The notes under the pieces: model-generated
What the model was told of the DNA's origin: nothing
The model's input: the letters and a program-made list of their open reading frames with translations, nothing else
The model's database searches: none
Translations under genes and position numbers: made by a program
Source of the DNA: Macrostomum lignano
Taxonomy: Eukaryota
Assembly: GCA_002269645.1 (NCBI GenBank)
Contig: NIVC01002842.1
Span: 1 to 64,000 of the forward strand
Length of the DNA stretch: 64,000 nucleotides
Direction of reading: 5' to 3'
Shown: piece by piece, positions 1,407 through 41,786 of the stretch
Layout: every line of letters starts with the position of its first letter
Numbering within the stretch: position 1 is the stretch's first letter

Positions 1407-1483
1407 TTTCGCAGGTGCGAGTGAATTATCATGGTTAGTTGCGATCAGGATGAGGATTCCGAGCCACAATTCCTTGTCCGCAG

Positions 1484-5277: not shown

Positions 5278-5389
5278 GTCACAGGAGTCGCCTGAGTCAC
5301 CCGAGACTCGAGGAGTCACCTGAACCTATTGAGCCTTCTAAACTTTGAAAAATCTAGCTTTCTGAAATATGAACACGCTTGAATTTGAA

Positions 5390-6330: not shown

Positions 6331-7550
6331 ACCTCAATCTTGAGCCTCCTAAACAGAGCCTAAACCTGCTAAATCCATCTACCTAAAAATCTTGAACTCT
6401 GTTTTTGTTGACGAAAAATGTTTTAAATGCCTCGCATTTATATAAAAGCTTCTTTGTGTCGAACGTCACAATTAATTTCAAAATTTGACTCTGTTTTAGC
6501 GAAACCGTTATCTCCGCCTCAAAGATGCTTGTTCTCGGCCAACTAATAATTATTATTCCTATTTTACATACTTATCTCTAGTTTTTTTCCTGTTCATTTA
6601 GTGCGAACCAATTAAGAGAACAAACGTTTAGCATGTGTCTAAACTTTCGAAACACTTTCTTGTACTTTTCTAGCGTTTATTTATTTAGTATAACTACTTA
6701 CAGGCTTCTCATCGTTAGTAGTCTATTTGCGCATATCGAGCGAATACTCGTAGCTGGCAGCATAGGACAATTCGGCATTCTGCGGCTAAAGAATGGGTCT
6801 TGAATGACGAAAAGATGCGTTTATAAAGTCACATAGCCTGACATATTGAATAATTGACAGGTGTACGTTGTGGCTTTGCCCTCTTCATTATATACAGCTC
6901 AGTGCCTGGTTTCCAATGCTCCAGCATAGCCTTCAGCGGCTGAATTTGTTCAATGAGACGGTCTCAACACACAGCCAGTCGCAGTCGAAGAGTTCCTCCG
7001 TCGGTCTGGCTAGAAACAAATATTTGCAATTCAACGACTTACTAATTTATTACCTGTGTCTGCGAGTATTTGTAGCATAATTTCCCAAACTTTAAAGCCG
7101 ATTGTTATATGTCGAGTCGGTTCTTTTTACGATATTTTCAAATACGACAGATGCCTCACTACACATTGAATAAATGAACGGACATCTGCAGTTTCTTCAG
7201 CCCATTAAATTTCTTGATACTTCCATATTAAGAAATAGATTGCATGAATGCTTTGTATACCCTATATACTCGTACTCCTATCTTTTTGACTTCTTGCCGA
7301 TGGTCGAGAAGTAGGAGACTGAGGAATTGGGATTTTGGCTTCGGCTTAAAATACAAATATTGGCGCTCTGTGTTAGCTCAATTCTCTGTAGTCAACCACG
7401 GCATGCTGTGTGGTCCCTACACAACACTTCCTAAGACTCAAGGCATAGGAATGTTTGAAAAACACGCAATCTCCTACATATATAGTAGTGTCTATGGTTA
7501 CATGTAGGCCGCAACCGCTAAAAGTCGCGCTTGATCTCTGAGCCATAATT

Positions 7551-7558
7551 TATAAAAG
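7551..7558 (+). promoter_or_regulatory. Possible TATA box upstream of the giant ORF
   Basis: TATAAAAG about 165 bp before ATG 7716, but in AT-rich DNA, so it could be chance. Confidence 0.2.
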
Positions 7559-7715
7559 CCTTTCCCAATCAACATTCATCGTTAATTTTTATGGCCAAAA
7601 ATTACGTTATTTAACTTCAACGCTACAAAATAACAAGTCTAAAACATGTTCCTTGAAGTAACCAAACTATACGGATTTTATAATACCGTTGCTTTGTATT
7701 AAAAAGCTAAAAGAT

Positions 7716-10700
7716 ATGGAAAGAAAATCTTCCGAAAAAGCTTCAAAGCAGCCGCCAGAGGAAGCAGCACCGACCAGCGCGGCTGTGACGGAGCTGATGA
7801 TCTCGAGGCTGAACAAGTTGAAGGCGTCTGGACTGTATGACGAGTCGGTGCTGACATCTGTCGGAATGGCACGGGCTCTGCTGTCGAGTGGTGCAACACC
7901 CGGATCGATGGAACGCCTCGACGGTGCGTTGGATTCTTACAAGAAGCAAGCGTCAGATAGAGACGCTCTTCTGGCCGCGGCTGTCGTTGACAAGGAAGAT
8001 GGCGTACAACCGGACGAGACTCCAAAGTCAGAAGCTCCTGCAGCTGAGGTCGAGAAGCCACAGGTTTCCACGGACGAGGTTGGAAAGCGTGTCGAGTCAA
8101 AGCAGCCGCCAGAGGAAGCAGCACCGACCAGCGCGGCTGTGACGGAGCTGATGATCTCGAGGCTGAACAAGTTGAAGGCGTCTGGACTGTATGACGAGTC
8201 GGTGCTGACATCTGTCGGAATGGCACGGGCTCTGCTGTCGAGTGGTGCAACACCCGGATCGATGGAACGCCTCGACGGTGCGTTGGATTCTTACAAGAAG
8301 CAAGCGTCAGATAGAGACGCTCTTCTGGCCGCGGCTGTCGTTGACAAGGAAGATGGCGTACAACCGGACGAGACTCCAAAGTCAGAAGCTCCTGCAGCTG
8401 AGGTCGAGAAGCCACAGGTTTCCACGGACGAGGTTGGAAAGCGTGTCGAGTCAAAGCAGCCGCCAGAGGAAGCAGCACCGACCAGCGCGGCTGTGACGGA
8501 GCTGATGATCTCGAGGCTGAACAAGTTGAAGGCGTCTGGACTGTATGACGAGTCGGTGCTGACATCTGTCGGAATGGCACGGGCTCTGCTGTCGAGTGGT
8601 GCAACACCCGGATCGATGGAACGCCTCGACGGTGCGTTGGATTCTTACAAGAAGCAAGCGTCAGATAGAGACGCTCTTCTGGCCGCGGCTGTCGTTGACA
8701 AGGAAGATGGCGTACAACCGGACGAGACTCCAAAGTCAGAAGCTCCTGCAGCTGAGGTCGAGAAGCCACAGGTTTCCACGGACGAGGTTGGAAAGCGTGT
8801 CGAGTCAAAGCAGCCGCCAGAGGAAGCAGCACCGACCAGCGCGGCTGTGACGGAGCTGATGATCTCGAGGCTGAACAAGTTGAAGGCGTCTGGACTGTAT
8901 GACGAGTCGGTGCTGACATCTGTCGGAATGGCACGGGCTCTGCTGTCGAGTGGTGCAACACCCGGATCGATGGAACGCCTCGACGGTGCGTTGGATTCTT
9001 ACAAGAAGCAAGCGTCAGATAGAGACGCTCTTCTGGCCGCGGCTGTCGTTGACAAGGAAGATGGCGTACAACCGGACGAGACTCCAAAGTCAGAAGCTCC
9101 TGCAGCTGAGGTCGAGAAGCCACAGGTTTCCACGGACGAGGTTGGAAAGCGTGTCGAGTCAAAGCAGCCGCCAGAGGAAGCAGCACCGACCAGCGCGGCT
9201 GTGACGGAGCTGATGATCTCGAGGCTGAACAAGTTGAAGGCGTCTGGACTGTATGACGAGTCGGTGCTGACATCTGTCGGAATGGCACGGGCTCTGCTGT
9301 CGAGTGGTGCAACACCCGGATCGATGGAACGCCTCGACGGTGCGTTGGATTCTTACAAGAAGCAAGCGTCAGATAGAGACGCTCTTCTGGCCGCGGCTGT
9401 CGTTGACAAGGAAGATGGCGTACAACCGGACGAGACTCCAAAGTCAGAAGCTCCTGCAGCTGAGGTCGAGAAGCCACAGGTTTCCACGGACGAGGTTGGA
9501 AAGCGTGTCGAGTCAAAGCAGCCGCCAGAGGAAGCAGCACCGACCAGCGCGGCTGTGACGGAGCTGATGATCTCGAGGCTGAACAAGTTGAAGGCGTCTG
9601 GACTGTATGACGAGTCGGTGCTGACATCTGTCGGAATGGCACGGGCTCTGCTGTCGAGTGGTGCAACACCCGGATCGATGGAACGCCTCGACGGTGCGTT
9701 GGATTCTTACAAGAAGCAAGCGTCAGATAGAGACGCTCTTCTGGCCGCGGCTGTCGTTGACAAGGAAGATGGCGTACAACCGGACGAGACTCCAAAGTCA
9801 GAAGCTCCTGCAGCTGAGGTCGAGAAGCCACAGGTTTCCACGGACGAGGTTGGAAAGCGTGTCGAGTCAAAGCAGCCGCCAGAGGAAGCAGCACCGACCA
9901 GCGCGGCTGTGACGGAGCTGATGATCTCGAGGCTGAACAAGTTGAAGGCGTCTGGACTGTATGACGAGTCGGTGCTGACATCTGTCGGAATGGCACGGGC
10001 TCTGCTGTCGAGTGGTGCAACACCCGGATCGATGGAACGCCTCGACGGTGCGTTGGATTCTTACAAGAAGCAAGCGTCAGATAGAGACGCTCTTCTGGCC
10101 GCGGCTGTCGTTGACAAGGAAGATGGCGTACAACCGGACGAGACTCCAAAGTCAGAAGCTCCTGCAGCTGAGGTCGAGAAGCCACAGGTTTCCACGGACG
10201 AGGTTGGAAAGCGTGTCGAGTCAAAGCAGCCGCCAGAGGAAGCAGCACCGACCAGCGCGGCTGTGACGGAGCTGATGATCTCGAGGCTGAACAAGTTGAA
10301 GGCGTCTGGACTGTATGACGAGTCGGTGCTGACATCTGTCGGAATGGCACGGGCTCTGCTGTCGAGTGGTGCAACACCCGGATCGATGGAACGCCTCGAC
10401 GGTGCGTTGGATTCTTACAAGAAGCAAGCGTCAGATAGAGACGCTCTTCTGGCCGCGGCTGTCGTTGACAAGGAAGATGGCGTACAACCGGACGAGACTC
10501 CAAAGTCAGAAGCTCCTGCAGCTGAGGTCGAGAAGCCACAGGTTTCCACGGACGAGGTTGGAAAGCGTGTCGAGTCAAAGCAGCCGCCAGAGGAAGCAGC
10601 ACCGACCAGCGCGGCTGTGACGGAGCTGATGATCTCGAGGCTGAACAAGTTGAAGGCGTCTGGACTGTATGACGAGTCGGTGCTGACATCTGTCGGAATG

Positions 10701-13700
10701 GCACGGGCTCTGCTGTCGAGTGGTGCAACACCCGGATCGATGGAACGCCTCGACGGTGCGTTGGATTCTTACAAGAAGCAAGCGTCAGATAGAGACGCTC
10801 TTCTGGCCGCGGCTGTCGTTGACAAGGAAGATGGCGTACAACCGGACGAGACTCCAAAGTCAGAAGCTCCTGCAGCTGAGGTCGAGAAGCCACAGGTTTC
10901 CACGGACGAGGTTGGAAAGCGTGTCGAGTCAAAGCAGCCGCCAGAGGAAGCAGCACCGACCAGCGCGGCTGTGACGGAGCTGATGATCTCGAGGCTGAAC
11001 AAGTTGAAGGCGTCTGGACTGTATGACGAGTCGGTGCTGACATCTGTCGGAATGGCACGGGCTCTGCTGTCGAGTGGTGCAACACCCGGATCGATGGAAC
11101 GCCTCGACGGTGCGTTGGATTCTTACAAGAAGCAAGCGTCAGATAGAGACGCTCTTCTGGCCGCGGCTGTCGTTGACAAGGAAGATGGCGTACAACCGGA
11201 CGAGACTCCAAAGTCAGAAGCTCCTGCAGCTGAGGTCGAGAAGCCACAGGTTTCCACGGACGAGGTTGGAAAGCGTGTCGAGTCAAAGCAGCCGCCAGAG
11301 GAAGCAGCACCGACCAGCGCGGCTGTGACGGAGCTGATGATCTCGAGGCTGAACAAGTTGAAGGCGTCTGGACTGTATGACGAGTCGGTGCTGACATCTG
11401 TCGGAATGGCACGGGCTCTGCTGTCGAGTGGTGCAACACCCGGATCGATGGAACGCCTCGACGGTGCGTTGGATTCTTACAAGAAGCAAGCGTCAGATAG
11501 AGACGCTCTTCTGGCCGCGGCTGTCGTTGACAAGGAAGATGGCGTACAACCGGACGAGACTCCAAAGTCAGAAGCTCCTGCAGCTGAGGTCGAGAAGCCA
11601 CAGGTTTCCACGGACGAGGTTGGAAAGCGTGTCGAGTCAAAGCAGCCGCCAGAGGAAGCAGCACCGACCAGCGCGGCTGTGACGGAGCTGATGATCTCGA
11701 GGCTGAACAAGTTGAAGGCGTCTGGACTGTATGACGAGTCGGTGCTGACATCTGTCGGAATGGCACGGGCTCTGCTGTCGAGTGGTGCAACACCCGGATC
11801 GATGGAACGCCTCGACGGTGCGTTGGATTCTTACAAGAAGCAAGCGTCAGATAGAGACGCTCTTCTGGCCGCGGCTGTCGTTGACAAGGAAGATGGCGTA
11901 CAACCGGACGAGACTCCAAAGTCAGAAGCTCCTGCAGCTGAGGTCGAGAAGCCACAGGTTTCCACGGACGAGGTTGGAAAGCGTGTCGAGTCAAAGCAGC
12001 CGCCAGAGGAAGCAGCACCGACCAGCGCGGCTGTGACGGAGCTGATGATCTCGAGGCTGAACAAGTTGAAGGCGTCTGGACTGTATGACGAGTCGGTGCT
12101 GACATCTGTCGGAATGGCACGGGCTCTGCTGTCGAGTGGTGCAACACCCGGATCGATGGAACGCCTCGACGGTGCGTTGGATTCTTACAAGAAGCAAGCG
12201 TCAGATAGAGACGCTCTTCTGGCCGCGGCTGTCGTTGACAAGGAAGATGGCGTACAACCGGACGAGACTCCAAAGTCAGAAGCTCCTGCAGCTGAGGTCG
12301 AGAAGCCACAGGTTTCCACGGACGAGGTTGGAAAGCGTGTCGAGTCAAAGCAGCCGCCAGAGGAAGCAGCACCGACCAGCGCGGCTGTGACGGAGCTGAT
12401 GATCTCGAGGCTGAACAAGTTGAAGGCGTCTGGACTGTATGACGAGTCGGTGCTGACATCTGTCGGAATGGCACGGGCTCTGCTGTCGAGTGGTGCAACA
12501 CCCGGATCGATGGAACGCCTCGACGGTGCGTTGGATTCTTACAAGAAGCAAGCGTCAGATAGAGACGCTCTTCTGGCCGCGGCTGTCGTTGACAAGGAAG
12601 ATGGCGTACAACCGGACGAGACTCCAAAGTCAGAAGCTCCTGCAGCTGAGGTCGAGAAGCCACAGGTTTCCACGGACGAGGTTGGAAAGCGTGTCGAGTC
12701 AAAGCAGCCGCCAGAGGAAGCAGCACCGACCAGCGCGGCTGTGACGGAGCTGATGATCTCGAGGCTGAACAAGTTGAAGGCGTCTGGACTGTATGACGAG
12801 TCGGTGCTGACATCTGTCGGAATGGCACGGGCTCTGCTGTCGAGTGGTGCAACACCCGGATCGATGGAACGCCTCGACGGTGCGTTGGATTCTTACAAGA
12901 AGCAAGCGTCAGATAGAGACGCTCTTCTGGCCGCGGCTGTCGTTGACAAGGAAGATGGCGTACAACCGGACGAGACTCCAAAGTCAGAAGCTCCTGCAGC
13001 TGAGGTCGAGAAGCCACAGGTTTCCACGGACGAGGTTGGAAAGCGTGTCGAGTCAAAGCAGCCGCCAGAGGAAGCAGCACCGACCAGCGCGGCTGTGACG
13101 GAGCTGATGATCTCGAGGCTGAACAAGTTGAAGGCGTCTGGACTGTATGACGAGTCGGTGCTGACATCTGTCGGAATGGCACGGGCTCTGCTGTCGAGTG
13201 GTGCAACACCCGGATCGATGGAACGCCTCGACGGTGCGTTGGATTCTTACAAGAAGCAAGCGTCAGATAGAGACGCTCTTCTGGCCGCGGCTGTCGTTGA
13301 CAAGGAAGATGGCGTACAACCGGACGAGACTCCAAAGTCAGAAGCTCCTGCAGCTGAGGTCGAGAAGCCACAGGTTTCCACGGACGAGGTTGGAAAGCGT
13401 GTCGAGTCAAAGCAGCCGCCAGAGGAAGCAGCACCGACCAGCGCGGCTGTGACGGAGCTGATGATCTCGAGGCTGAACAAGTTGAAGGCGTCTGGACTGT
13501 ATGACGAGTCGGTGCTGACATCTGTCGGAATGGCACGGGCTCTGCTGTCGAGTGGTGCAACACCCGGATCGATGGAACGCCTCGACGGTGCGTTGGATTC
13601 TTACAAGAAGCAAGCGTCAATGTTGACGGTTATTGGTCAGGAAAACAAGGTAACCGAGCAGCAGCGTTGGAAAGACTTAGTGGACCAGATCAACTTCTTG

Positions 13701-16700
13701 TGCTCTGTTTATCCGTCTGATTCCTTGTCTCCTATGCCTCTGGTACATGGTCTCCATAAACTGGTGGACGCTCGTCCAATGTTTTTGCAAGAGCTTCGGC
13801 CTGGCATTCGTAGCCTAGCATCCGGGGTCCAGCTTTGCCATTCGAGTTTTCTTGTGAAAGGAGTTTTACAGCAGCTACGTATCGCCAGGTCTGCCGAGTT
13901 GATCCAGTTCCTTGTTTCGCCTCTTCGTCAGACTATGGTAGAGCTAATGCGGTGTAAGTTTTGGTCATGGATCTCAGAACGGCATACTGCTGAAGTTGCT
14001 CAAATCTCATATTGGATAGAAATCGCATCGAATTCGGAGAATCAACTGTCGTCGTGTAGGAACGTGAATTTATCAGAATTTTTTAATTCGATACATCGTC
14101 AACTTGAAATTTTACATAGTAGAAGATCATATTGGCACGGTCTTCAAATATCGATGGTATCAATGAATAAATTCTTGGTTACAGATTTTTCAGCAGAATT
14201 GTCTAATTGTTTAGCCATGCTAAACAAGTACGCACTTCTAAACAGCGACATGGTACGTTTTGAACTGTCAATGAAAACTGCGATGGGCCATATCTCAGAA
14301 GCTACAGACTACTATTGTGAGGCGATCCAATGCTCTTTACTCCGGATTCCTCTTAAAAAACTCCGATATGAATTTCTAACTGAGTCAACTAGAAGCTTTC
14401 TTTATCAAGCGCCTCGTTTACTATTAACGGAGGGGTCCACTTGGAAAAAGTTTTTATCCATATTTTTGCATGCAGAGAAAGGCCTTCAGCATCAGCTCAC
14501 TAAAGGTCAAAGTGCACCAGTAGGACGACAAGCACTGGGAAGGTTCAAGCGACTACTGCATATTTACACAAAGACTTTGATCACACTAGAAACTACATAC
14601 TTTCGACCGGATTATGGCAAATACAACAAAAAACAACAGACTCACTCCCAAAAATGCTACCATTCCGAAACGAAATCGCAGACACAATAGAATTCAATAC
14701 GAACAAAAGCACGAAACCAAAAAAGAAAACGCGGCAATGAACGCGGCACTGTTTGACGCTACGATCGAGCGACTGGCGCGTCTGAATCGCATCGGACTGT
14801 TCGACGCCTCGGTGCTGACGTCGGTGGAGCAGGCGCGAGCCGCGCTGCAGCATTCAGCTAGACCCGGAGCGATGCAGCGACTGAACGCGGAGCTGGCAGA
14901 GTACAAGCGCCGCCTTGATGAGATCACCGCAGCTGAACAGGCGGAAGCTGCAGCGCCAGAACAGGAGGAGGAAGAGCCAGAAGCTGAGCCGGTCGTCGAG
15001 GACGCGGCAATGAACGCGGCACTGTTTGACGCTACGATCGAGCGACTGGCGCGTCTGAATCGCATCGGACTGTTCGACGCCTCGGTGCTGACGTCGGTGG
15101 AGCAGGCGCGAGCCGCGCTGCAGCATTCAGCTAGACCCGGAGCGATGCAGCGACTGAACGCGGAGCTGGCAGAGTACAAGCGCCGCCTTGATGAGATCAC
15201 CGCAGCTGAACAGGCGGAAGCTGCAGCGCCAGAACAGGAGGAGGAAGAGCCAGAAGCTGAGCCGGTCGTCGAGGACGCGGCAATGAACGCGGCACTGTTT
15301 GACGCTACGATCGAGCGACTGGCGCGTCTGAATCGCATCGGACTGTTCGACGCCTCGGTGCTGACGTCGGTGGAGCAGGCGCGAGCCGCGCTGCAGCATT
15401 CAGCTAGACCCGGAGCGATGCAGCGACTGAACGCGGAGCTGGCAGAGTACAAGCGCCGCCTTGATGAGATCACCGCAGCTGAACAGGCGGAAGCTGCAGC
15501 GCCAGAACAGGAGGAGGAAGAGCCAGAAGCTGAGCCGGTCGTCGAGGACGCGGCAATGAACGCGGCACTGTTTGACGCTACGATCGAGCGACTGGCGCGT
15601 CTGAATCGCATCGGACTGTTCGACGCCTCGGTGCTGACGTCGGTGGAGCAGGCGCGAGCCGCGCTGCAGCATTCAGCTAGACCCGGAGCGATGCAGCGAC
15701 TGAACGCGGAGCTGGCAGAGTACAAGCGCCGCCTTGATGAGATCACCGCAGCTGAACAGGCGGAAGCTGCAGCGCCAGAACAGGAGGAGGAAGAGCCAGA
15801 AGCTGAGCCGGTCGTCGAGGACGCGGCAATGAACGCGGCACTGTTTGACGCTACGATCGAGCGACTGGCGCGTCTGAATCGCATCGGACTGTTCGACGCC
15901 TCGGTGCTGACGTCGGTGGAGCAGGCGCGAGCCGCGCTGCAGCATTCAGCTAGACCCGGAGCGATGCAGCGACTGAACGCGGAGCTGGCAGAGTACAAGC
16001 GCCGCCTTGATGAGATCACCGCAGCTGAACAGGCGGAAGCTGCAGCGCCAGAACAGGAGGAGGAAGAGCCAGAAGCTGAGCCGGTCGTCGAGGACGCGGC
16101 AATGAACGCGGCACTGTTTGACGCTACGATCGAGCGACTGGCGCGTCTGAATCGCATCGGACTGTTCGACGCCTCGGTGCTGACGTCGGTGGAGCAGGCG
16201 CGAGCCGCGCTGCAGCATTCAGCTAGACCCGGAGCGATGCAGCGACTGAACGCGGAGCTGGCAGAGTACAAGCGCCGCCTTGATGAGATCACCGCAGCTG
16301 AACAGGCGGAAGCTGCAGCGCCAGAACAGGAGGAGGAAGAGCCAGAAGCTGAGCCGGTCGTCGAGGACGCGGCAATGAACGCGGCACTGTTTGACGCTAC
16401 GATCGAGCGACTGGCGCGTCTGAATCGCATCGGACTGTTCGACGCCTCGGTGCTGACGTCGGTGGAGCAGGCGCGAGCCGCGCTGCAGCATTCAGCTAGA
16501 CCCGGAGCGATGCAGCGACTGAACGCGGAGCTGGCAGAGTACAAGCGCCGCCTTGATGAGATCACCGCAGCTGAACAGGCGGAAGCTGCAGCGCCAGAAC
16601 AGGAGGAGGAAGAGCCAGAAGCTGAGCCGGTCGTCGAGGACGCGGCAATGAACGCGGCACTGTTTGACGCTACGATCGAGCGACTGGCGCGTCTGAATCG

Positions 16701-19700
16701 CATCGGACTGTTCGACGCCTCGGTGCTGACGTCGGTGGAGCAGGCGCGAGCCGCGCTGCAGCATTCAGCTAGACCCGGAGCGATGCAGCGACTGAACGCG
16801 GAGCTGGCAGAGTACAAGCGCCGCCTTGATGAGATCACCGCAGCTGAACAGGCGGAAGCTGCAGCGCCAGAACAGGAGGAGGAAGAGCCAGAAGCTGAGC
16901 CGGTCGTCGAGGACGCGGCAATGAACGCGGCACTGTTTGACGCTACGATCGAGCGACTGGCGCGTCTGAATCGCATCGGACTGTTCGACGCCTCGGTGCT
17001 GACGTCGGTGGAGCAGGCGCGAGCCGCGCTGCAGCATTCAGCTAGACCCGGAGCGATGCAGCGACTGAACGCGGAGCTGGCAGAGTACAAGCGCCGCCTT
17101 GATGAGATCACCGCAGCTGAACAGGCGGAAGCTGCAGCGCCAGAACAGGAGGAGGAAGAGCCAGAAGCTGAGCCGGTCGTCGAGGACGCGGCAATGAACG
17201 CGGCACTGTTTGACGCTACGATCGAGCGACTGGCGCGTCTGAATCGCATCGGACTGTTCGACGCCTCGGTGCTGACGTCGGTGGAGCAGGCGCGAGCCGC
17301 GCTGCAGCATTCAGCTAGACCCGGAGCGATGCAGCGACTGAACGCGGAGCTGGCAGAGTACAAGCGCCGCCTTGATGAGATCACCGCAGCTGAACAGGCG
17401 GAAGCTGCAGCGCCAGAACAGGAGGAGGAAGAGCCAGAAGCTGAGCCGGTCGTCGAGGACGCGGCAATGAACGCGGCACTGTTTGACGCTACGATCGAGC
17501 GACTGGCGCGTCTGAATCGCATCGGACTGTTCGACGCCTCGGTGCTGACGTCGGTGGAGCAGGCGCGAGCCGCGCTGCAGCATTCAGCTAGACCCGGAGC
17601 GATGCAGCGACTGAACGCGGAGCTGGCAGAGTACAAGCGCCGCCTTGATGAGATCACCGCAGCTGAACAGGCGGAAGCTGCAGCGCCAGAACAGGAGGAG
17701 GAAGAGCCAGAAGCTGAGCCGGTCGTCGAGGACGCGGCAATGAACGCGGCACTGTTTGACGCTACGATCGAGCGACTGGCGCGTCTGAATCGCATCGGAC
17801 TGTTCGACGCCTCGGTGCTGACGTCGGTGGAGCAGGCGCGAGCCGCGCTGCAGCATTCAGCTAGACCCGGAGCGATGCAGCGACTGAACGCGGAGCTGGC
17901 AGAGTACAAGCGCCGCCTTGATGAGATCACCGCAGCTGAACAGGCGGAAGCTGCAGCGCCAGAACAGGAGGAGGAAGAGCCAGAAGCTGAGCCGGTCGTC
18001 GAGGACGCGGCAATGAACGCGGCACTGTTTGACGCTACGATCGAGCGACTGGCGCGTCTGAATCGCATCGGACTGTTCGACGCCTCGGTGCTGACGTCGG
18101 TGGAGCAGGCGCGAGCCGCGCTGCAGCATTCAGCTAGACCCGGAGCGATGCAGCGACTGAACGCGGAGCTGGCAGAGTACAAGCGCCGCCTTGATGAGAT
18201 CACCGCAGCTGAACAGGCGGAAGCTGCAGCGCCAGAACAGGAGGAGGAAGAGCCAGAAGCTGAGCCGGTCGTCGAGGACGCGGCAATGAACGCGGCACTG
18301 TTTGACGCTACGATCGAGCGACTGGCGCGTCTGAATCGCATCGGACTGTTCGACGCCTCGGTGCTGACGTCGGTGGAGCAGGCGCGAGCCGCGCTGCAGC
18401 ATTCAGCTAGACCCGGAGCGATGCAGCGACTGAACGCGGAGCTGGCAGAGTACAAGCGCCGCCTTGATGAGATCACCGCAGCTGAACAGGCGGAAGCTGC
18501 AGCGCCAGAACAGGAGGAGGAAGAGCCAGAAGCTGAGCCGGTCGTCGAGGACGCGGCAATGAACGCGGCACTGTTTGACGCTACGATCGAGCGACTGGCG
18601 CGTCTGAATCGCATCGGACTGTTCGACGCCTCGGTGCTGACGTCGGTGGAGCAGGCGCGAGCCGCGCTGCAGCATTCAGCTAGACCCGGAGCGATGCAGC
18701 GACTGAACGCGGAGCTGGCAGAGTACAAGCGCCGCCTTGATGAGATCACCGCAGCTGAACAGGCGGAAGCTGCAGCGCCAGAACAGGAGGAGGAAGAGCC
18801 AGAAGCTGAGCCGGTCGTCGAGGACGCGGCAATGAACGCGGCACTGTTTGACGCTACGATCGAGCGACTGGCGCGTCTGAATCGCATCGGACTGTTCGAC
18901 GCCTCGGTGCTGACGTCGGTGGAGCAGGCGCGAGCCGCGCTGCAGCATTCAGCTAGACCCGGAGCGATGCAGCGACTGAACGCGGAGCTGGCAGAGTACA
19001 AGCGCCGCCTTGATGAGATCACCGCAGCTGAACAGGCGGAAGCTGCAGCGCCAGAACAGGAGGAGGAAGAGCCAGAAGCTGAGCCGGTCGTCGAGGACGC
19101 GGCAATGAACGCGGCACTGTTTGACGCTACGATCGAGCGACTGGCGCGTCTGAATCGCATCGGACTGTTCGACGCCTCGGTGCTGACGTCGGTGGAGCAG
19201 GCGCGAGCCGCGCTGCAGCATTCAGCTAGACCCGGAGCGATGCAGCGACTGAACGCGGAGCTGGCAGAGTACAAGCGCCGCCTTGATGAGATCACCGCAG
19301 CTGAACAGGCGGAAGCTGCAGCGCCAGAACAGGAGGAGGAAGAGCCAGAAGCTGAGCCGGTCGTCGAGGACGCGGCAATGAACGCGGCACTGTTTGACGC
19401 TACGATCGAGCGACTGGCGCGTCTGAATCGCATCGGACTGTTCGACGCCTCGGTGCTGACGTCGGTGGAGCAGGCGCGAGCCGCGCTGCAGCATTCAGCT
19501 AGACCCGGAGCGATGCAGCGACTGAACGCGGAGCTGGCAGAGTACAAGCGCCGCCTTGATGAGATCACCGCAGCTGAACAGGCGGAAGCTGCAGCGCCAG
19601 AACAGGAGGAGGAAGAGCCAGAAGCTGAGCCGGTCGTCGAGGACGCGGCAATGAACGCGGCACTGTTTGACGCTACGATCGAGCGACTGGCGCGTCTGAA

Positions 19701-25700: not shown

Positions 25701-28700
25701 TCTGAATCGCATCGGACTGTTCGACGCCTCGGTGCTGACGTCGGTGGAGCAGGCGCGAGCCGCGCTGCAGCATTCAGCTAGACCCGGAGCGATGCAGCGA
25801 CTGAACGCGGAGCTGGCAGAGTACAAGCGCCGCCTTGATGAGATCACCGCAGCTGAACAGGCGGAAGCTGCAGCGCCAGAACAGGAGGAGGAAGAGCCAG
25901 AAGCTGAGCCGGTCGTCGAGGACGCGGCAATGAACGCGGCACTGTTTGACGCTACGATCGAGCGACTGGCGCGTCTGAATCGCATCGGACTGTTCGACGC
26001 CTCGGTGCTGACGTCGGTGGAGCAGGCGCGAGCCGCGCTGCAGCATTCAGCTAGACCCGGAGCGATGCAGCGACTGAACGCGGAGCTGGCAGAGTACAAG
26101 CGCCGCCTTGATGAGATCACCGCAGCTGAACAGGCGGAAGCTGCAGCGCCAGAACAGGAGGAGGAAGAGCCAGAAGCTGAGCCGGTCGTCGAGGACGCGG
26201 CAATGAACGCGGCACTGTTTGACGCTACGATCGAGCGACTGGCGCGTCTGAATCGCATCGGACTGTTCGACGCCTCGGTGCTGACGTCGGTGGAGCAGGC
26301 GCGAGCCGCGCTGCAGCATTCAGCTAGACCCGGAGCGATGCAGCGACTGAACGCGGAGCTGGCAGAGTACAAGCGCCGCCTTGATGAGATCACCGCAGCT
26401 GAACAGGCGGAAGCTGCAGCGCCAGAACAGGAGGAGGAAGAGCCAGAAGCTGAGCCGGTCGTCGAGGACGCGGCAATGAACGCGGCACTGTTTGACGCTA
26501 CGATCGAGCGACTGGCGCGTCTGAATCGCATCGGACTGTTCGACGCCTCGGTGCTGACGTCGGTGGAGCAGGCGCGAGCCGCGCTGCAGCATTCAGCTAG
26601 ACCCGGAGCGATGCAGCGACTGAACGCGGAGCTGGCAGAGTACAAGCGCCGCCTTGATGAGATCACCGCAGCTGAACAGGCGGAAGCTGCAGCGCCAGAA
26701 CAGGAGGAGGAAGAGCCAGAAGCTGAGCCGGTCGTCGAGGACGCGGCAATGAACGCGGCACTGTTTGACGCTACGATCGAGCGACTGGCGCGTCTGAATC
26801 GCATCGGACTGTTCGACGCCTCGGTGCTGACGTCGGTGGAGCAGGCGCGAGCCGCGCTGCAGCATTCAGCTAGACCCGGAGCGATGCAGCGACTGAACGC
26901 GGAGCTGGCAGAGTACAAGCGCCGCCTTGATGAGATCACCGCAGCTGAACAGGCGGAAGCTGCAGCGCCAGAACAGGAGGAGGAAGAGCCAGAAGCTGAG
27001 CCGGTCGTCGAGGACGCGGCAATGAACGCGGCACTGTTTGACGCTACGATCGAGCGACTGGCGCGTCTGAATCGCATCGGACTGTTCGACGCCTCGGTGC
27101 TGACGTCGGTGGAGCAGGCGCGAGCCGCGCTGCAGCATTCAGCTAGACCCGGAGCGATGCAGCGACTGAACGCGGAGCTGGCAGAGTACAAGCGCCGCCT
27201 TGATGAGATCACCGCAGCTGAACAGGCGGAAGCTGCAGCGCCAGAACAGGAGGAGGAAGAGCCAGAAGCTGAGCCGGTCGTCGAACGCGGCAATGACGCG
27301 GCACTCGAGCGACTGGCGCGTCTGAATCGCATCGGACTGTTCGACGCCTCGGTGCTGACGTCGGTGGAGCAGGCGCGAGCCGCGCTGCAGCATTCAGCTA
27401 GACCCGGAGCGATGCAGCGACTGAACGCGGAGCTGGCAGAGTACAAGCGCCGCCTTGATGAGATCACCGCAGCTGAACAGGCGGAAGCTGCAGCGCCAGA
27501 ACAGGAGGAGGAAGAGCCAGAAGCAGATGCTGAAGCATACATCCTCTCTGAAGCATTTGATGAAAATTTGACATCTTTTTCTAAACATTTTTATTCGACG
27601 GATTCCATGGTGTGCAGCATTGAACGGCTTTTGAGCGTTTTTGATTGGTTTCGTTATAGGGTTGATCGTGGTCTTACGGCATTTTGCTGCGTACTTCAGG
27701 CACAGTTTGTTGGAGCTGCCCTTCGACAGTTAGTGCGTCAGCTTCAACTAATGACTTCATTGTTTAGAGAGGATTTGGTTTGTGGTCCTGTTAAAGAAAT
27801 TCTTTTCGCGGTTCAGCAAGAACCTCTTTGGTCCGAGATTAGAAAGCGCAACGAGGCATCATTTTCATATCTCTCATTGTGGATTGAGAGGTTCGGTGAC
27901 GCGGATGTTGTTCCCGCAGACGCTGCTGTGTCGGTCTGCATTATTTTTCTGAGCAATATTTCTCAGCCGTGAAGACATTTCAGCGGTACGGTCAGTACTG
28001 GTCTGGCGTTCACGTATGTCTCCTGAAAATAAGTGAGACACTGCAGAGCCATATAACTGAAGCGTCTCGTAGTTACCGCGAACAGTGTTGGCTATTGAAA
28101 GATACGCCAGGCTAAGCAAATCTTTGACGAAATTCGAGTATGCTTTGCTAAAATCAATTCAATATATTGTTCAGGCGGACAAAAATCATCTTGAAGTCAT
28201 TCAGTGCGCTCTCTGCCGTATTCCAGTTCATCATCGTGAGTTAAGATATTTTTCGAAAGAAACGAGAGAAAAGCTACTTAAAGCGTATCTAAGTACCAAC
28301 TTTCAAGGCAACACTTGGCAAAAGTACGCGATGCTATTCGCTAAGGCAGACGAAATGTTAGACTGTCATATGCAAGATAAAAAGAAGGCTAGAGCGGCAA
28401 GAAGGTCTATTTTTCGAATGAAACAACTATTAAAGTACTTCACAACCGACTTCGATACAACAAAAACGTATATACTATCTACGGGAGTTTGGGAGCAACA
28501 AGACCGCACAGTCTCAAAACTACCTCAACTTGGGCCACTAATAGTCGAAATAGACAGCCATTCCGAAATCGCTGACGACCAGGTCCACCATCAAGGACTC
28601 GACGTTATTAATCCAACGAAAATGTCACTTAAGTTTGACACTTTAGAAGAGCTATTGAACGAGGAAGTGGCCAGACTGATGGCGGATCGACTGTCGCAGC

Positions 28701-31700
28701 TTAGAAGCATCGGAGGCCCGTTCGACAGCTCGGTCGTGACCTCGGTCGAGCAGTCGCGAGCGGCGCTGCAGCCAGATGCGACGCGAGTAGCGCTGCAGCG
28801 ACTCGACTCGGAGCTGGGCGAGTACAGACGTCGCGTAGACGAGAGAGGCGCCACGGCGGCCGCTTTAGCAGAGGACGAGAAAGAGGAAACGCAGGTGATA
28901 CCGGACGACGCAGCAGTAGTAGAACAACAGGCGCAGCCAGACAGGTCAATGAACGAGGAAGTGGCCAGACTGATGGCGGATCGACTGTCGCGGCTTAGAA
29001 GCATCGGAGGCCCGTTCGACAACTCGGTCGTGACCTCGGTCGAGCAGTCGCGAGCGGCGCTGCAGCCAGATGCGACGCGAGTAGCGCTGCAGCGACTCGA
29101 CTCGGAGCTGGGCGAGTACAGACGTCGCGTAGACGAGAGAGGCGCCACGGCGGCCGCTTTAGCAGAGGACGAGAAAGAGGAAACGCAGGTGATACCGGAC
29201 GACGCAGCAGTAGTAGAACAACAGGCGCAGCCAGACAGGTCAATGAACGAGGAAGTGGCCAGACTGATGGCGGATCGACTGTCGCGGCTTAGAAGCATCG
29301 GAGGCCCGTTCGACAACTCGGTCGTGACCTCGGTCGAGCAGTCGCGAGCGGCGCTGCAGCCAGATGCGACGCGAGTAGCGCTGCAGCGACTCGACTCGGA
29401 GCTGGGCGAGTACAGACGTCGCGTAGATGAGAGAGGCGCCCCGGCCGCTTTAGCAGAGGACGAGAAAGAGGAAACGCAGGGATACCGGACGACGCAGCAG
29501 TAGTAGAACAACAGGCGCAGCCAGACAGGTCAATGAACGAGGAAGTGGCCAGACTGATGGCGGATCGACTGTCGCGGCTTAGAAGCATCGGAGGCCCGTT
29601 CGACAACTCGGTCGTGACCTCGGTCGAGCAGTCGCGAGCGGCGCTGCAGCCAGATGCGACGCGAGTAGCGCTGCAGCGACTCGACTCGGAGCTGGGCGAG
29701 TACAGACGTCGCGTAGACGAGAGAGGCGCCACGGCGGCCGCTTTAGCAGAGGACGAGAAAGAGGAAACGCAGGTGATACCGGACGACGCAGCAGTAGTAG
29801 AACAACAGGCGCAGCCAGACAGGTCAATGAACGAGGAAGTGGCCAGACTGATGGCGGATCGACTGTCGCGGCTTAGAAGCATCGGAGGCCCGTTCGACAA
29901 CTCGGTCGTGACCTCGGTCGAGCAGTCGCGAGCGGCGCTGCAGCCAGATGCGACGCGAGTAGCGCTGCAGCGACTCGACTCGGAGCTGGGCGAGTACAGA
30001 CGTCGCGTAGATGAGAGAGGCGCCCGGCCGCTTTAGCAGAGGACGAGAAAGAGGAAGCGCAGGGATACCGGACGACGCAGCAGTAGTAGAACAACAGGCG
30101 CAGCCAGACAGGTCAATGAACGAGGAAGTGGCCAGACTCATGGCGGATCGACTGTCGCGGCTTAGAAGCATCGGAGGCCCGTTCGACAACTCGGTCGTGA
30201 CCTCGGTCGAGCAGTCGCGAGCGGCGCTGCAGCCAGATGCGACGCGAGTAGCGCTGCAGCGACTCGACTCGGAGCTGGGCGAGTACAGACGTCGCGTAGA
30301 TGAGAGAGGCGCCCGGCGGCCGCTTTAGCAGAGGACGAGAAAGAGGAAACGCAGGGATACCGGACGACGCAGCAGTAGTAGAACAACAGGCGCAGCCAGA
30401 CAGGTCAATGAACGAGGAAGTGGCCAGACTCATGGCGGATCGACTGTCGCGGCTTAGAAGCATCGGAGGCCCGTTCGACAACTCGGTCGTGACCTCGGTC
30501 GAGCAGTCGCGAGCGGCGCTGCAGCCAGATGCGACGCGAGTAGCGCTGCAGCGACTCGACTCGGAGCTGGGCGAGTACAGACGTCGCGTAGATGAGAGAG
30601 GCGCCCGGCCGCTTTAGCAGAGGACGAGAAAGAGGAAGCGCAGGGATACCGGACGACGCAGCAGTAGTAGAACAACAGGCGCAGCCAGACAGGTCAATGA
30701 ACGAGGAAGTGGCCAGACTGATGGCGGATCGACTGTCGCGGCTTAGAAGCATCGGAGGCCCGTTCGACAACTCGGTCGTGACCTCGGTCGAGCAGTCGCG
30801 AGCGGCGCTGCAGCCAGATGCGACGCGAGTAGCGCTGCAGCGACTCGACTCGGAGCTGGGCGAGTACAGACGTCGCGTAGATGAGAGAGGCGCCCGGCGG
30901 CCGCTTTAGCAGAGGACGAGAAAGAGGAAGCGCAGGGATACCGGACGACGCAGCAGTAGTAGAACAACAGGCGCAGCCAGACAGGTCAATGAACGAGGAA
31001 GTGGCCAGACTCATGGCGGATCGACTGTCGCGGCTTAGAAGCATCGGAGGCCCGTTCGACAACTCGGTCGTGACCTCGGTCGAGCAGTCGCGAGCGGCGC
31101 TGCAGCCAGATGCGACGCGAGTAGCGCTGCAGCGACTCGACTCGGAGCTGGGCGAGTACAGACGTCGCGTAGATGAGAGAGGCGCCCGGCCGCTTTAGCA
31201 GAGGACGAGAAAGAGGAAACGCAGGGATACCGGACGACGCAGCAGTAGTAGAACAACAGGCGCAGCCAGACAGGTCAATGAACGAGGAAGTGGCCAGACT
31301 CATGGCGGATCGACTGTCGCGGCTTAGAAGCATCGGAGGCCCGTTCGACAACTCGGTCGTGACCTCGGTCGAGCAGTCGCGAGCGGCGCTGCAGCCAGAT
31401 GCGACGCGAGTAGCGCTGCAGCGACTCGACTCGGAGCTGGGCGAGTACAGACGTCGCGTAGATGAGAGAGGCGCCCCGGCCGCTTTAGCAGAGGACGAGA
31501 AAGAGGAAACGCAGGGATACCGGACGACGCAGCAGTAGTAGAACAACAGGCGCAGCACAGACAGGTCAATGAACGAGGAAGTGGCCAGACTCATGGCGGA
31601 TCGACTGTCGCGGCTTAGAAGCATCGGAGGCCCGTTCGACAACTCGGTCGTGACCTCGGTCGAGCAGTCGCGAGCGGCGCTGCAGCCAGATGCGACGCGA

Positions 31701-34700
31701 GTAGCGCTGCAGCGACTCGACTCGGAGCTGGGCGAGTACAGACGTCGCGTAGATGAGAGAGGCGCCCCGGCCGCTTTAGCAGAGGACGAAGAAGAGGAAG
31801 CGCAGGGGATACCGGACGACGCAGCAGTAGTAGAACAACAGGCGCAGCCAGACAGGTCAATGAACGAGGAAGTGGCCAGACTCATGGCGGATCGACTGTC
31901 GCGGCTTAGAAGCATCGGAGGCCCGTTCGACAACTCGGTCGTGACCTCGGTCGAGCAGTCGCGAGCGGCGCTGCAGCCAGATGCGACGCGAGTAGCGCTG
32001 CAGCGACTCGACTCGGAGCTGGGCGAGTACAGACGTCGCGTAGATGAGAGAGGCGCCCCGGCGCTTTAGCAGAGGACGAGAAAGAGGAAGCGCAGGGGAT
32101 ACCGGACGACGCAGCAGTAGTAGAACAACAGGCGCAGCCAGACAGGTCAATGACGAGGAAGTGGCCAGACTCATGGCGGATCGACTGTCGCGGCTTAGAA
32201 GCATCGGAGGCCCGTTCGACAACTCGGTCGTGACCTCGGTCGAGCAGTCGCGAGCGGCGCTGCAGCCAGATGCGACGCGAGTAGCGCTGCAGCGACTCGA
32301 CTCGGAGCTGGGCGAGTACAGACGTCGCGTAGATGAAGAGGCGCCCGGCCGCTTTAGCAGAGGACGAGAAAGAGGAAGCGCAGGGATACCGGACGACGCA
32401 GCAGTAGTAGAACAACAGGCGCAGCCAGACAGGTCAATGAACGAGGAAGTGGCCAGACTCATGGCGATCGACTGTCGCGGCTTAGAAGCATCGGAGGCCC
32501 GTTCGACAACTCGGTCGTGACCTCGTCGAGCAGTCGCGAGCGGCGCTGCAGCCAGATGCGACGCGAGTAGCGCTGCAGCGACTCGACTCGGAGCTGGGCG
32601 AGTACAGACGTCGCGTAGATGAGAGAGGCGCCCGGCCGCTTTAGCAGAGGACGAGAAAGAGGAAGCGCAGGGGATACCGGACGACGCAGCAGTAGTAGAA
32701 CAACAGGCGCAGCCAGACAGGTCAATGAACGAGGAAGTGGCCAGACTCATGGCGGATCGACTGTCGCGGCTTAGAAGCATCGGAGGCCCGTCGACAACTC
32801 GGTCGTGACCTCGGTCGAGCAGTCGCGAGCGGCGGCTGCAGCCAGATGCGACGCGAGTAGCGCTGCAGCGACTCGACTCGGAGCTGGGCGAGTACAGACG
32901 TCGCGTAGATGAGAGAGGCGCCCCGGCCGCTTTAGCAGAGGACGAGAAAGAGGAAGCGCAGGGGATACCGGACGACGCAGAGTAGTAGAACAACAGGCGC
33001 AGCCAGACAGGTCAATGAACGAGGAAGTGGCCAGACTCATGGCGGATCGACTGTCGCGGCTTAGAAGCATCGGAGGCCCGTTCGACAACTCGGTCGTGAC
33101 TCGGTCGAGCAGTCGCGAGCGGCGCTGCAGCCAGATGCGACGCGAGTAGCGCTGCAGCGACTCGACTCGGAGCTGGGCGAGTACAGACGTCGCGTAGATG
33201 AGAGAGGCGCCCGGCCGCTTTAGCAGAGGACGAGAAAGAGGAAGCGCAGGGATACCGGACGACGCAGCAGTAGTAGAACAACAGGCGCAGCACAGACAGG
33301 TCAATGAACGAGGAAGTGCCAGACTCATGGCGGATCGACTGTCGCGGCTTAGAGCATCGGAGGCCCGTTCGACAACTCGGTCGTGACCTCGGTCGAGCAG
33401 TCGCGAGCGGCGCTGCAGCCAGATGCGACGCGAGTAGCGCTGCAGCGACTCGACTCGGAGCTGGGCGAGTACAGACGTCGCGTAGATGAGAGAGGCGCCC
33501 CGGCCGCTTTAGCAGAGGACGAGAAAGAGGAAGCGCAGGGGATACCGGACGACGCAGCAGTAGTAGAACAACAGGCGCAGCCAGACAGGTCAATGAACGA
33601 GGAAGTGGCCAGACTCATGGCGGATCGACTGTCGCGGCTTAGAAGCATCGGAGGCCCGTTCGACAACTCGGTCGTGACCTCGTCGAGCAGTCGCGAGCGG
33701 CGCTGCAGCCAGATGCGACGCGAGTAGCGCTGCAGCGACTCGACTCGGAGCTGGCGAGTACAGACGTCGCGTAGATGAGAGAGGCGCCCTGGCCGCTTTA
33801 GCAGAGGACGAGAAAGAGGAAGCGCAGGGGATACCGGACGACGCAGCAGTAGTAGAACAACAGGCGCAGCCAGACAGGTCAATGAACGAGGAAGTGGCCA
33901 GACTCATGGCGGATCGACTGTCGCGGCTTAGAAGCATCGGAGGCCCGTTCGACAACTCGGTCGTGACCTCGGTCGAGCAGTCGCGAGCGGCGCTGCAGCC
34001 AGATGCGACGCGAGTAGCGCTGCAGCGACTCGACTCGGAGCTGGCGAGTACAGACGTCGCGTAGATGAGAGAGGCGCCCCGGCCGCTTTAGCAAGAGGAC
34101 GAAGAAGAGGAAGCGCAGGGATACCGGACGACGCAGCAGTAGTAGAACAACTAGGCGCAGCCAGACAGGTCAATGAACGAGGAAGTGGCCAGACTCATGG
34201 CGGATCGACTGTCGCGGCTTAAGAAGCATCGGAGGCCCGTTCGACAACTCGGTCGTGACCTCGGTCGAGCAGTCGCGAGCGGCGCTGCAGCCAGATGCGA
34301 CGCGAGTAGCGCTGCAGCGACTCGACTCGGAGCTGGGCGAGTACAGACGTCGCGTAAGATGAGAGAGGCGCCCCGGCGTTTAGCAGAGGACGAGAAAGAG
34401 GAAGCGCAGGGATACCGGACGACGCAGCAGTAGTAGAACAACAGGCGCAGCCAGACAGGTCAATGAACGAGGAAGTGGCCAGACTCATGGCGGATCGACT
34501 GTCGCGGCTTAGAAGCATCGGAGGCCCGTTCGACAACTCGGTCGTGACCTCGTCGAGCAGTCGCGAGCGGCGCTGCAGCCAGATGCGACGCGAGTAGAGC
34601 GCTGCAGCGACTCGACTCGGAGCTGGGCGAGTACAGACGTCGCGTAGATGAGAGAGGCGCCCGCGGCCGCTTTAGCAGAGGACGAGAAAGAGGAAGCGCA

Positions 34701-35513
34701 GGGGATACCGGACGACGCAGCAGTAGTAGAACAACAGGCGCAGCCAGACAGGTCAGAACGAGGAAGTGGCCAGACTCATGGCGGATCGACTGTCGCGGCT
34801 TAGAAGCATCGGAGGCCCGTTCGACAACTCGGTCGTGACCTCGGTCGAGCAGTCGCGAGCGGCGCTGCAGCCAGATGCGACGCGAAGTAGCGCTGCAGCG
34901 ACTCGACTCGGAGCTGGGCGAGTACAGACGTCGCGTAGATGAAGAGAGGCGCGCCTGGCCGCTTTAGCAGAGGACGAGAAAGAGGAAGCGCAGGGGATAC
35001 CGGACGACGCAGCAGTAGTAGAACAACAGGCGCAGCCAGACAGGTCAATGAACGAGGAAGTGGCCAGACTCATGGCGGATCGACTGTCGCGGCTTAGAAG
35101 CATCGGAGGCCCGTTCGACAACTGCGGTCGTGACCTCGGTCGAGCAGTCGCGAGCCGCGCTGCAGCCAGATGCGACGCGAGTAGCGCTGCAGCGACTCGA
35201 CTCGGAGCTGGGCGAGTACAGACGTCGCGTAGATAAGAGAGGCGCCCCGGCCGCTTTAGCAGAGGACGAGAAAGAGAAGCGCAGGGGATACCGACGACGC
35301 AGCAGTAGTAGAACAACAGGCGCAGCCAGACAGGTCAATGAACGAGGAAGTGGCCAGACTCATGGCGGATCGACTGTCGCGGCTTAGAAGCATCGGAGGC
35401 CCGTTCGACAACTCGGTCGTGACCTCGGTCGAGCAGTCGCGAGCGGCGCTGCAGCCAGATGCGACGCGAGTAGCGCTGCAGCGACTCGACTCGGAGCTGG
35501 GCGAGTACAGACG
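7716..35513 (+). CDS. Giant intronless tandem-repeat protein (more than 9,000 aa, 3' end lost in the gap); ORF-track ORFs 7689-14690, 14614-27972 and 28085 onward are probably one gene broken by single-base deletions
   Basis: The first in-frame ATG is at 7716. The region holds three arrays of homologous units whose lengths are multiples of 3, separated by two homologous unique domains. U1/U2 similarity continues through shifted frames at about 14586, about 14720, about 27920 and about 28075. Confidence 0.72.
7743..13619 (+). repeat. Coding array R1: 354-bp (118-aa) unit x 16.6
   Basis: Shadow ORFs recur exactly every 354 bp (7743...13407). The units appear identical at nucleotide level on inspection. 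Confidence 0.97.
13620..14728 (+). other. Unique coding domain U1 (~370 aa, predicted alpha-helical, family unknown)
   Basis: Non-repetitive in-frame continuation of R1, homologous to U2 (WSWISERHTAEVAQISYWIE, YWHG, EAIQCSLLRIP, STWKKF, NYILSTGLW). Confidence 0.8.
14729..27524 (+). repeat. Coding array R2: 273-bp (91-aa) unit x ~47
   Basis: ATG AAC recurs at 14737+273n up to 27022 (46 standard units), followed by a last unit that is 18 bp shorter. The units appear identical on inspection. Confidence 0.97.
27525..28655 (+). other. Unique coding domain U2 (~375 aa), paralog of U1
   Basis: WSEIRKRNEASFSYLSLWIE (frame 1), QYWSG (frame 3, position 27993), and EVIQCALCRIP, NTWQKY, TYILSTGVW (frame 2). 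It runs in frame into array R3. Confidence 0.8.
28656..35513 (+). repeat. Coding array R3: 294/291-bp (98/97-aa) unit x ~23, truncated by the gap
   Basis: The first units repeat at exactly 294 bp (shadow ORFs 28701, 28995). Later units carry increasing 1-nt indels, mostly in G/C runs. Confidence 0.93.
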
Positions 35514-35771
35514 NNNNNNNNNNNNNNNNNNNNNNNNNNNNNNNNNNNNNNNNNNNNNNNNNNNNNNNNNNNNNNNNNNNNNNNNNNNNNNNNNNNNNNN
35601 NNNNNNNNNNNNNNNNNNNNNNNNNNNNNNNNNNNNNNNNNNNNNNNNNNNNNNNNNNNNNNNNNNNNNNNNNNNNNNNNNNNNNNNNNNNNNNNNNNNN
35701 NNNNNNNNNNNNNNNNNNNNNNNNNNNNNNNNNNNNNNNNNNNNNNNNNNNNNNNNNNNNNNNNNNNNNNN
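35514..35771. other. Assembly gap (258 N)
   Basis: Run of N. Confidence 1.

Positions 35772-41512: not shown

Positions 41513-41786
<274 letters not shown>

Follow-up and report, generated by a model that had tools for sequence, protein, structure and literature searches.

A giant tandem-repeat gene of the flatworm Macrostomum lignano, in one reading frame in its sister copies and interrupted in the assembled window

We describe a gene of the flatworm Macrostomum lignano (line DV1; assembly GCA_002269645.1 = NIVC00000000, Mlig_3_7), in which three arrays of long tandem repeats (R1, R2 and R3) are separated by two unique segments (U1 and U2). The stretch of DNA analysed, hereafter the window, corresponds to positions 1-64,000 of scaffold NIVC01002842.1 (102,980 bp), with window and scaffold coordinates equal. 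The gene is a single giant frame, (R1)n-U1-(R2)n-U2-(R3)n, as observed in sister copies and not in the window itself. It is intronless, and its product comprises a MERKSSEKA leader, n R1 units of 118 amino acids (aa), U1 of ~370 aa, n R2 units of 91 aa, U2 of ~377 aa, n R3 units of 98 or 97 aa, and a 153-aa tail followed by a stop. The shortest copy assembled has ~6,000 codons; the window copy, with the tail added, would amount to ~9,500 aa and ~1.04 MDa, with an isoelectric point (pI) of ~4.5. Overall, the reading that we consider probable is that the window carries a genomic copy of one very large protein-coding gene, restricted to this species, whose product may serve as a cytoplasmic spacer.

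The continuity of the frame was established at three sister loci, all from Mlig_3_7: NIVC01001166.1 (L002), NIVC01002841.1 (L003) and NIVC01000838.1 (L004). This assembly was made from PacBio reads using Canu, with Pilon polishing and SSPACE scaffolding (PMC5730564). In L003, 25.6 R1 units, U1 and at least 36.5 R2 units form a single open frame of 6,743 codons, with the R2 array running off the locus end. L004 is a gap-free, complete copy and the shortest one assembled, with 19.6 R1 units, U1, 17.9 R2 units, U2, 11.7 R3 units, the tail and a stop; everything from R2 to the stop is contained in one open reading frame (ORF) of 3,343 aa (L004 10837-20868). L002 consists of two pieces, R2-U2-R3 (at least 19 R2 units), which is likewise in frame across U2, and R3 (17.5 units)-tail-stop; U2 is intact in both L002 and L004. 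Because these sister copies are free of the breaks found in the window, the gene corresponds to a single reading frame. The initial annotation had proposed more than 9,000 aa in one exon, uninterrupted over 27.8 kb: the single frame was recovered in the sister copies, whereas that of the assembled window is broken.

In both L004 and L002, R3 is followed by the 153-aa tail, which is Ser-rich and acidic (pI 4.2) and shows no similarity to U1 or U2, and then by the stop. When a third unique segment (U3), whose presence the initial annotation had raised as a question, was looked for after R3 in the sister copies, an unrelated tail and a stop were found in its place. In L002, a 14-N scaffold gap (8561-8574) joins the minus-strand R2-U2-R3 contig head-to-head with the plus-strand R3-tail contig. 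Such an inverted arrangement was probably introduced by SSPACE within repeats and would otherwise represent an inverted duplicate copy.

Arrays in the window were called using Tandem Repeats Finder, which gave 100% matches for R1, 99% for R2, and, for R3, a period of ~289 bp in 23.6 copies with 98% matches and 1% indels. The three coding arrays first noticed in the raw sequence were confirmed in position, unit size and copy number, as were the unique segments of ~1.1 kb after the first two arrays. The features of the window copy are as follows:

6331-7715, plus strand: unique AT-rich upstream region, candidate promoter or 5' untranslated region, between the 16-bp minisatellite and the start codon; collinear with and nearly identical to L004 1489-2877.
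7716-7742, plus strand: start codon and 9-aa leader MERKSSEKA, with identical ATG and leader in L004.
7743-13619, plus strand: R1 array, 354 bp (118 aa) x16.6; 16 of 16 full units identical.
13620-14728, plus strand: U1, 1,109 bp (~370 aa), predicted all-helical; two 1-bp deletions in the window copy.
14729-27524, plus strand: R2 array, 273 bp (91 aa) x46.9; 45 of 46 units identical.
27525-28655, plus strand: U2, 1,131 bp (~377 aa), helical, homologue of U1; two 1-bp deletions in the window copy.
28656-35513, plus strand: R3 array, ~23 units of the 294-bp (98-aa) and 291-bp (97-aa) types, ending at the scaffold gap.
35514-35771, no strand: SSPACE scaffold gap of 258 N; the window copy lacks the remainder of R3 together with the 153-aa C-terminal tail.

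The two true R3 unit types, whose coexistence had been suggested from the outset, are one of 294 bp (...GATAAALAEDEKEETQVI...) and one of 291 bp (...GAPAALAEDEKEEAQGI...); the 294-bp arrays of L004 (11.7 units) and L002 (17.5 units) are in frame. The tail, its downstream DNA and a U3 were each sought in the window and none was present, and no convincing ORF or gene was found in the sequence after the gap (35.8-64 kb). Given this absence, either the window copy has its 3' end within the gap or the scaffold join is to unrelated sequence; the join at 35514-35771 may therefore link unrelated contigs. Window positions 35772-50000 share nothing with the DNA downstream of the tail in L002.

The 5' side of L004 shares with the window the 16-bp minisatellite, the 1.4-kb upstream region and the ATG/MERKSSEKA start (ATG at L004 2878). 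A tubulin gene (Pfam Tubulin and Tubulin_C; L004 1-233) ends ~2.6 kb 5' of the ATG of the giant gene, on the same strand; its counterpart position in the window would fall before the scaffold start. Unrelated non-coding minisatellites densely surround the gene (window 1-6330 and 41510-63983), with 6-70 copies each at 89-98% identity. Their units measure 30, 32, 21 and 16 bp on the 5' side, and comprise (TATC)n and units of 18, 32, 30, 75, 27 and 28 bp on the 3' side.

Several features indicate that the frame is protein-coding. The unit lengths (354, 273, 294 and 291 bp) are all multiples of 3, and U1 and U2 are stop-free for ~370 codons at just 42% GC. Between arrays, the ratio of non-synonymous to synonymous substitution rates (dN/dS) was 0.37-0.48, with third-position differences predominating. 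Between genomic copies, U1 exhibited 6 synonymous and 3 non-synonymous changes (ratio of non-synonymous to synonymous differences per site, pN/pS, 0.14), and U2 exhibited 9 and 13, respectively (pN/pS 0.40). These substitution patterns strongly support purifying selection. The sequence thus combines a frame maintained across unique AT-rich segments, signs of purifying selection, and paralogous parts that are homologous as protein only.

The existing GenBank models on these loci, derived from RNA sequencing (RNA-seq) transcript assembly and TransDecoder, are BOX15_Mlig011518g1/g3, Mlig002418g1 and Mlig012374g1. All are designated 'hypothetical protein' and most are partial; pieces lie at window 12966-14690 and 28085-29503, and on L002, L003 and L004. 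The gene is split into at least three of these differently numbered 'hypothetical, partial' models and is, for this reason, invisible in the current annotation. As the models are based on RNA-seq, they provide indirect evidence that the gene is transcribed. A tryptic peptide that could serve for its detection, IGLFDASVLTSVEQAR, is present in the R2 unit.

At the protein level, the R1, R2 and R3 units are homologous to each other (37-52% identity) and share a core of ~62 aa with 18 invariant residues (R..L..L...G..D.SV.TSV...RA.L). U1 and U2, compared in their intact versions, share 25% identity over 336 aa, nearly their full length (pairwise E 4e-34), while no DNA similarity between them was found. 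The homology among arrays and between unique segments described in the initial annotation was therefore borne out, and U1 and U2 are, judged from this alignment, diverged duplicates. A faint unit-like motif was seen at U2 residues ~188-215 (window ~28085-28170) and U1 residues 198-225, with AIERYARLSKSLTKFEYALLKSIQ in U2 versus TIERLARLNRIGLFDASVLTSVEQ in R2. It hints that the U domains contain an ancient degenerate unit, but is not statistically significant. A derivation of the whole U domain from a degenerate array of old units was rejected, with a non-significant hhalign probability of 3% and a hidden Markov model (HMM) score of 1.1 bits.

To describe the fold of the repeats, a model of two R2 units was obtained using AlphaFold2 from an alignment that also contained R1 and R3; its mean predicted local distance difference test (pLDDT) score was 73. 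In each unit, three helices (block pLDDT 75-88) were followed by a disordered spacer (pLDDT < 50). The model of R1 units plus U1 (P0001), made from a single sequence, reached a pLDDT of 40 and is usable for secondary structure only; U1 was all-helical in it. Net charge differed between the two parts of the unit, from +1 to +3 in the cores and from -8 to -13 in the spacers, of which 32-52% consisted of Pro, Glu, Val and Lys. We therefore propose, with moderate confidence in these predictions, that each repeat is composed of a slightly basic three-helix core of ~60 aa and a strongly acidic, disordered spacer of 30-60 aa, rich in Pro, Glu and Ala. No transmembrane-like segment was found in the protein.

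Such a protein could form a cytoplasmic beads-on-a-spring scaffold or an elastic spacer, a proposal that we hold tentatively and place somewhat short of even. Its reach would be set by the number of repeats, and U1, U2 and the tail might act as attachment or interaction hubs.

It could instead be that the same gene encodes a matrix protein destined for secretion or for storage in granules (glue, rhabdite, shell or seminal material), resembling Mlig-ap2 or the Balbiani-ring proteins of Chironomus, and receives its signal peptide from an unrecognised 5' exon; we regard this as rather unlikely. Highly acidic, homogenised repeats are indeed common among secretory matrix proteins, and the 5' end of the gene is defined by its ORF alone. 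Moreover, giant repeat proteins such as Mlig-ap2 are secreted by M. lignano (PMC6410801). However, as first noted from the raw sequence, no hydrophobic leader or signal peptide is present at ATG 7716, which opens the MERKSSEKA leader, is conserved in the window and L004, and is preceded by an in-frame stop at 7659. The 1.4-kb unique region upstream likewise contained nothing convincing as a signal-peptide exon. In addition, the repeats are free of Cys, the Cys residues of the U domains (7 in U1 and 11 in U2) are not conserved apart from a single one, and extracellular domains are absent, all of which argues against a secreted product.

The closest known protein in kind is Mlig-ap2, a giant adhesive protein of 14,794 aa, with 21 repeats of 255 aa followed by 25 repeats of 221 aa (Wunderer et al. 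2019, PMC6410801). Secreted from adhesive glands, it is rich in Cys and contains vWD, TIL, LDLa and TSP1 domains (PMC6410801). Both proteins are giant, belong to the same species and consist in bulk of consecutive arrays of long, near-identical repeats. Compared with the published description of Mlig-ap2, the present protein is set apart by its units of 118, 91 and 98 aa, its Cys-free repeats, and the lack of a signal peptide and of any Pfam domain. The vWD, TIL, LDLa and TSP1 domains and the Cys richness of Mlig-ap2 thus place our protein outside that family.

Four other systems offer functional analogies only. Like spectrin, nesprin and plakin, the protein appears as a long tandem of helical modules with a predicted three-helix core and weak, sub-threshold Pfam Spectrin matches; unlike spectrin repeats (~106 aa), its modules have a core of ~60 aa and are connected by long, acidic, disordered spacers instead of continuous helical linkers, and CH or other terminal domains of spectrin-type rods are absent. 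The acidic spacers, predicted to be disordered and rich in Pro/Glu/Val/Lys or Glu/Ala, recall the PEVK and poly-E segments of titin, where length would similarly follow repeat number, but there is no sequence homology to titin and there are no Ig or Fn3 domains. AHNAK (desmoyokin) is a giant intracellular scaffold of ~5,900 aa without a signal peptide, made mostly of ~128-aa tandem repeats and encoded by one huge exon; its non-helical repeats bear no sequence relationship to those described here, and our exhaustive search gave no animal relatives beyond M. lignano. Finally, the Balbiani-ring proteins BR1, BR2 and BR6 of Chironomus, of ~1 MDa, have very long exons and homogenised units of ~60-100 aa, each divided into a 'constant' part that is structured and a 'subrepeat' that is charged and Pro-rich. 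They differ from the present protein in being secreted and Cys-containing, and no homology was found.

We searched for relatives in several ways, and, in agreement with the initial annotation, which recognised neither unit, no known family was matched in Pfam, PDB, Foldseek or exhaustive HMMER searches. Pfam scans of R1x2, R2x2, R3x2, U1, U2 and the tail gave sub-threshold matches only, with none for U1 and U2. Among these matches, the Spectrin repeat (PF00435) was rejected, with R2x2 scoring 19.7 bits and R3x2 14.3 bits (gathering score 29.9), as was the Ish1 repeat (PF10281) at 20.8 bits for R1x2 (gathering score 26.6). The HBM helical bimodular sensor domain (PF16591), with 22.4 bits and E 9e-5 for R3x2 (gathering score 29.8), was also rejected, the match, otherwise present just as a faint or precomputed hit, being most likely compositional and due to Ala/Arg/Glu-rich helices. 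A Spectrin three-helix bundle (~106 aa) did not fit the AlphaFold2 unit core of ~60-75 aa, and the best Foldseek match against PDB had an E-value of 0.13, with template modelling (TM) scores < 0.35; nothing at E <= 0.001 was obtained in PDB with the two-unit R2 model.

PDB sequence searches with unit and U-domain profiles identified no relative; the best unit match, KDPG aldolase (E 0.007), was judged spurious. In an exhaustive HMMER (phmmer) search of a unit and U1 against 1.84 billion representative proteins, only M. lignano proteins were found, apart from one bacterial TPR-like repeat protein (P0003, E 3e-7), which we attributed to composition or repeats and rejected as an artefact. When 5.8 billion clusters were queried by word-indexed searches, every protein returned was encoded on the scaffold of the window. 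The protein is therefore an orphan within the databases searched, and 'species-restricted' is provisional, since these databases appear to be without other Macrostomum transcriptomes.

In the window, ORF1 extends from 7689 (ATG 7716) to a stop at 14688-14690 and ORF2, which is ATG-initiated and lies in another frame, from 14614 to 27972. Two further frame changes occur within U2, and the R3 frame (ORF 28085-29503) is open for ~3 units only. Alignment with the sister copies showed that the four breaks in U1 and U2 are 1-bp deletions private to the window, located after 14568 (CC to C), 14694 (CC to C), 27926 and 28080. Each of them removes one base from a stretch of two or three identical ones, and those in U1 result in a false stop at 14688-14690. 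U1 of L004 contains two private 1-bp deletions of its own, which differ from those of the window. The deletions at 27926 and 28080 hit positions at which L002 and L004 disagree (T/C and A/G, respectively), which suggests consensus dropout from mixed-copy reads.

The R3 units of the window measured 288-294 bp, and 288-292 bp after the first ~3. In the part of the unit that was compared, its 3' variable stretch, only the C4/G4 runs of 291-bp units varied in length, with the 294-bp units constant there; alignment of full units also revealed scattered single-base gaps elsewhere, which were commoner towards the scaffold gap. Introns were rejected as a cause of the frame changes, as homology runs on across every break, leaving no room for an intron, and the sister copies differ by exactly 1 base. 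The breaks in the window are, on these alignments, most probably uncorrected long-read (PacBio) consensus or homopolymer errors.

If the frameshifts were real, the window copy would be a decaying pseudogene, with the other homeologous copies functional. Four breaks within 2.2 kb of unique sequence, and many more in R3, could be read in this way, and the large amount of redundant duplicated chromosomal material in DV1 (PMC5730564) would allow a copy to be lost without cost. We nevertheless find this improbable: every break is a 1-base deletion, with all four in U1 and U2 falling in short runs of identical bases, and substitutions in the window copy are mostly synonymous. The different private deletions of L004, the restriction of length changes to C4/G4 runs in the compared part of the R3 unit, and the two deletions at sites that vary between other copies point in the same direction.

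Another explanation, which we judge very improbable, is that each array with its C-terminal unique domain forms a separate gene, as three tandem paralogues or as a trans-spliced polycistron. The stop at 14688, the ATG-initiated ORF from 14614 and the differently numbered GenBank models would be compatible with separate genes, and polycistronic precursors account for ~7% of the transcripts in M. lignano (PMC5730564). However, the sister copies are stop-free across both R1-U1-R2 and R2-U2-R3, and the stop in the window is produced by a private 1-bp deletion.

A non-coding megasatellite with incidental open frames in GC-rich repeats is scarcely credible: simple or tandem repeats do make up 15% of the M. 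lignano genome (PMC5730564), unrelated non-coding minisatellites abound in the window, and long antisense ORFs run on the minus strand through R1 (window 7699-13620, 1,973 aa) and R2 (14694-27542, 4,282 aa), but these end at the array borders and are thus a mechanical product of stop-free, GC-rich units and not genes, whereas the sense frame crosses U1 and U2 at 42% GC, the arrays and U domains are homologous as protein only, unit lengths are multiples of 3 and pN/pS is below 1.

Some points weigh against a single gene with a cytoplasmic product. The reading frame of the window copy is literally broken as assembled, and its deletions may be real inactivating mutations of this copy. The 100% identity of units could in part have been produced by polishing with multi-mapped reads, and copy numbers in arrays of 6-13 kb composed of identical units may be mis-assembled. 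Moreover, the gene identifiers were not found in the full text or supplements of the M. lignano papers searched, and no direct transcript or peptide evidence was seen there. The functional proposal is without homology support, with empty Foldseek, Pfam and PDB searches, and a 5' exon or signal peptide may be missing. We nonetheless retain a single giant gene as the probable reading.

The copies differ mainly in the lengths of their arrays. R1 was present in 16.6, 25.6 and 19.6 copies in the window, L003 and L004, respectively; R2 in 46.9, at least 36.5, 17.9 and at least 19 copies in the window, L003, L004 and L002; and R3 in at least 23, 11.7 and at least 17.5 copies in the window, L004 and L002. 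R1 and R2 units were identical between the window and L003, except for one variant site in 3 of the 24 R1 units, while U1 differed by 0.8%. Composition also varied within the one ORF: the arrays had a GC content of 0.58-0.64 and a GC content at third codon positions (GC3) of 0.59-0.68, versus 0.42 and 0.40, respectively, in U1 and U2.

These data fit a duplication of the module followed by independent expansion of each array: identity is 25% between the U domains and 37-52% between units of different arrays, as opposed to ~100% between units of one array. The initial annotation had the repeat-plus-U module duplicated at least twice; this succession of duplication and expansion is in keeping with it, although, as just two U domains exist, duplication of U is shown only once. 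Each array may have been expanded and homogenised by unequal exchange or gene conversion, which, if GC-biased, would explain the raised GC3 of the arrays. A broader and more tentative possibility, which we consider doubtful, is a Macrostomum-restricted family of megadalton cytoplasmic bead-and-spring proteins, with lengths ranging from ~6,000 to more than 9,500 aa between homeologous copies, in which arrays are kept identical by ongoing exchange within and between copies while the unique domains diverge.

Giant repeat proteins are well known as a class, and the present one, which has no bearing on a long-standing open question, is a newly described, uncharacterised member of this familiar general kind. 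It serves as a caution that, where repeat-rich genes are assembled from long reads, very long ORFs can be concealed by breaks in the frame. It further illustrates cleanly a two-tier repeat architecture in which the arrays are strongly homogenised, homeologs differ in copy number, and GC3 contrasts markedly within one ORF. If real and expressed, the protein would be among the largest of M. lignano, where only Mlig-ap2 has been reported to be larger. Joining the split models provides a defined target, and the unique sequences of U1 and U2 are suited to in situ probes and RNA interference (RNAi). Should the bead-and-spring family prove true, it would offer a system for the study of concerted evolution, GC-biased conversion and the scaling of function with length in a transgenic, RNAi-amenable flatworm.

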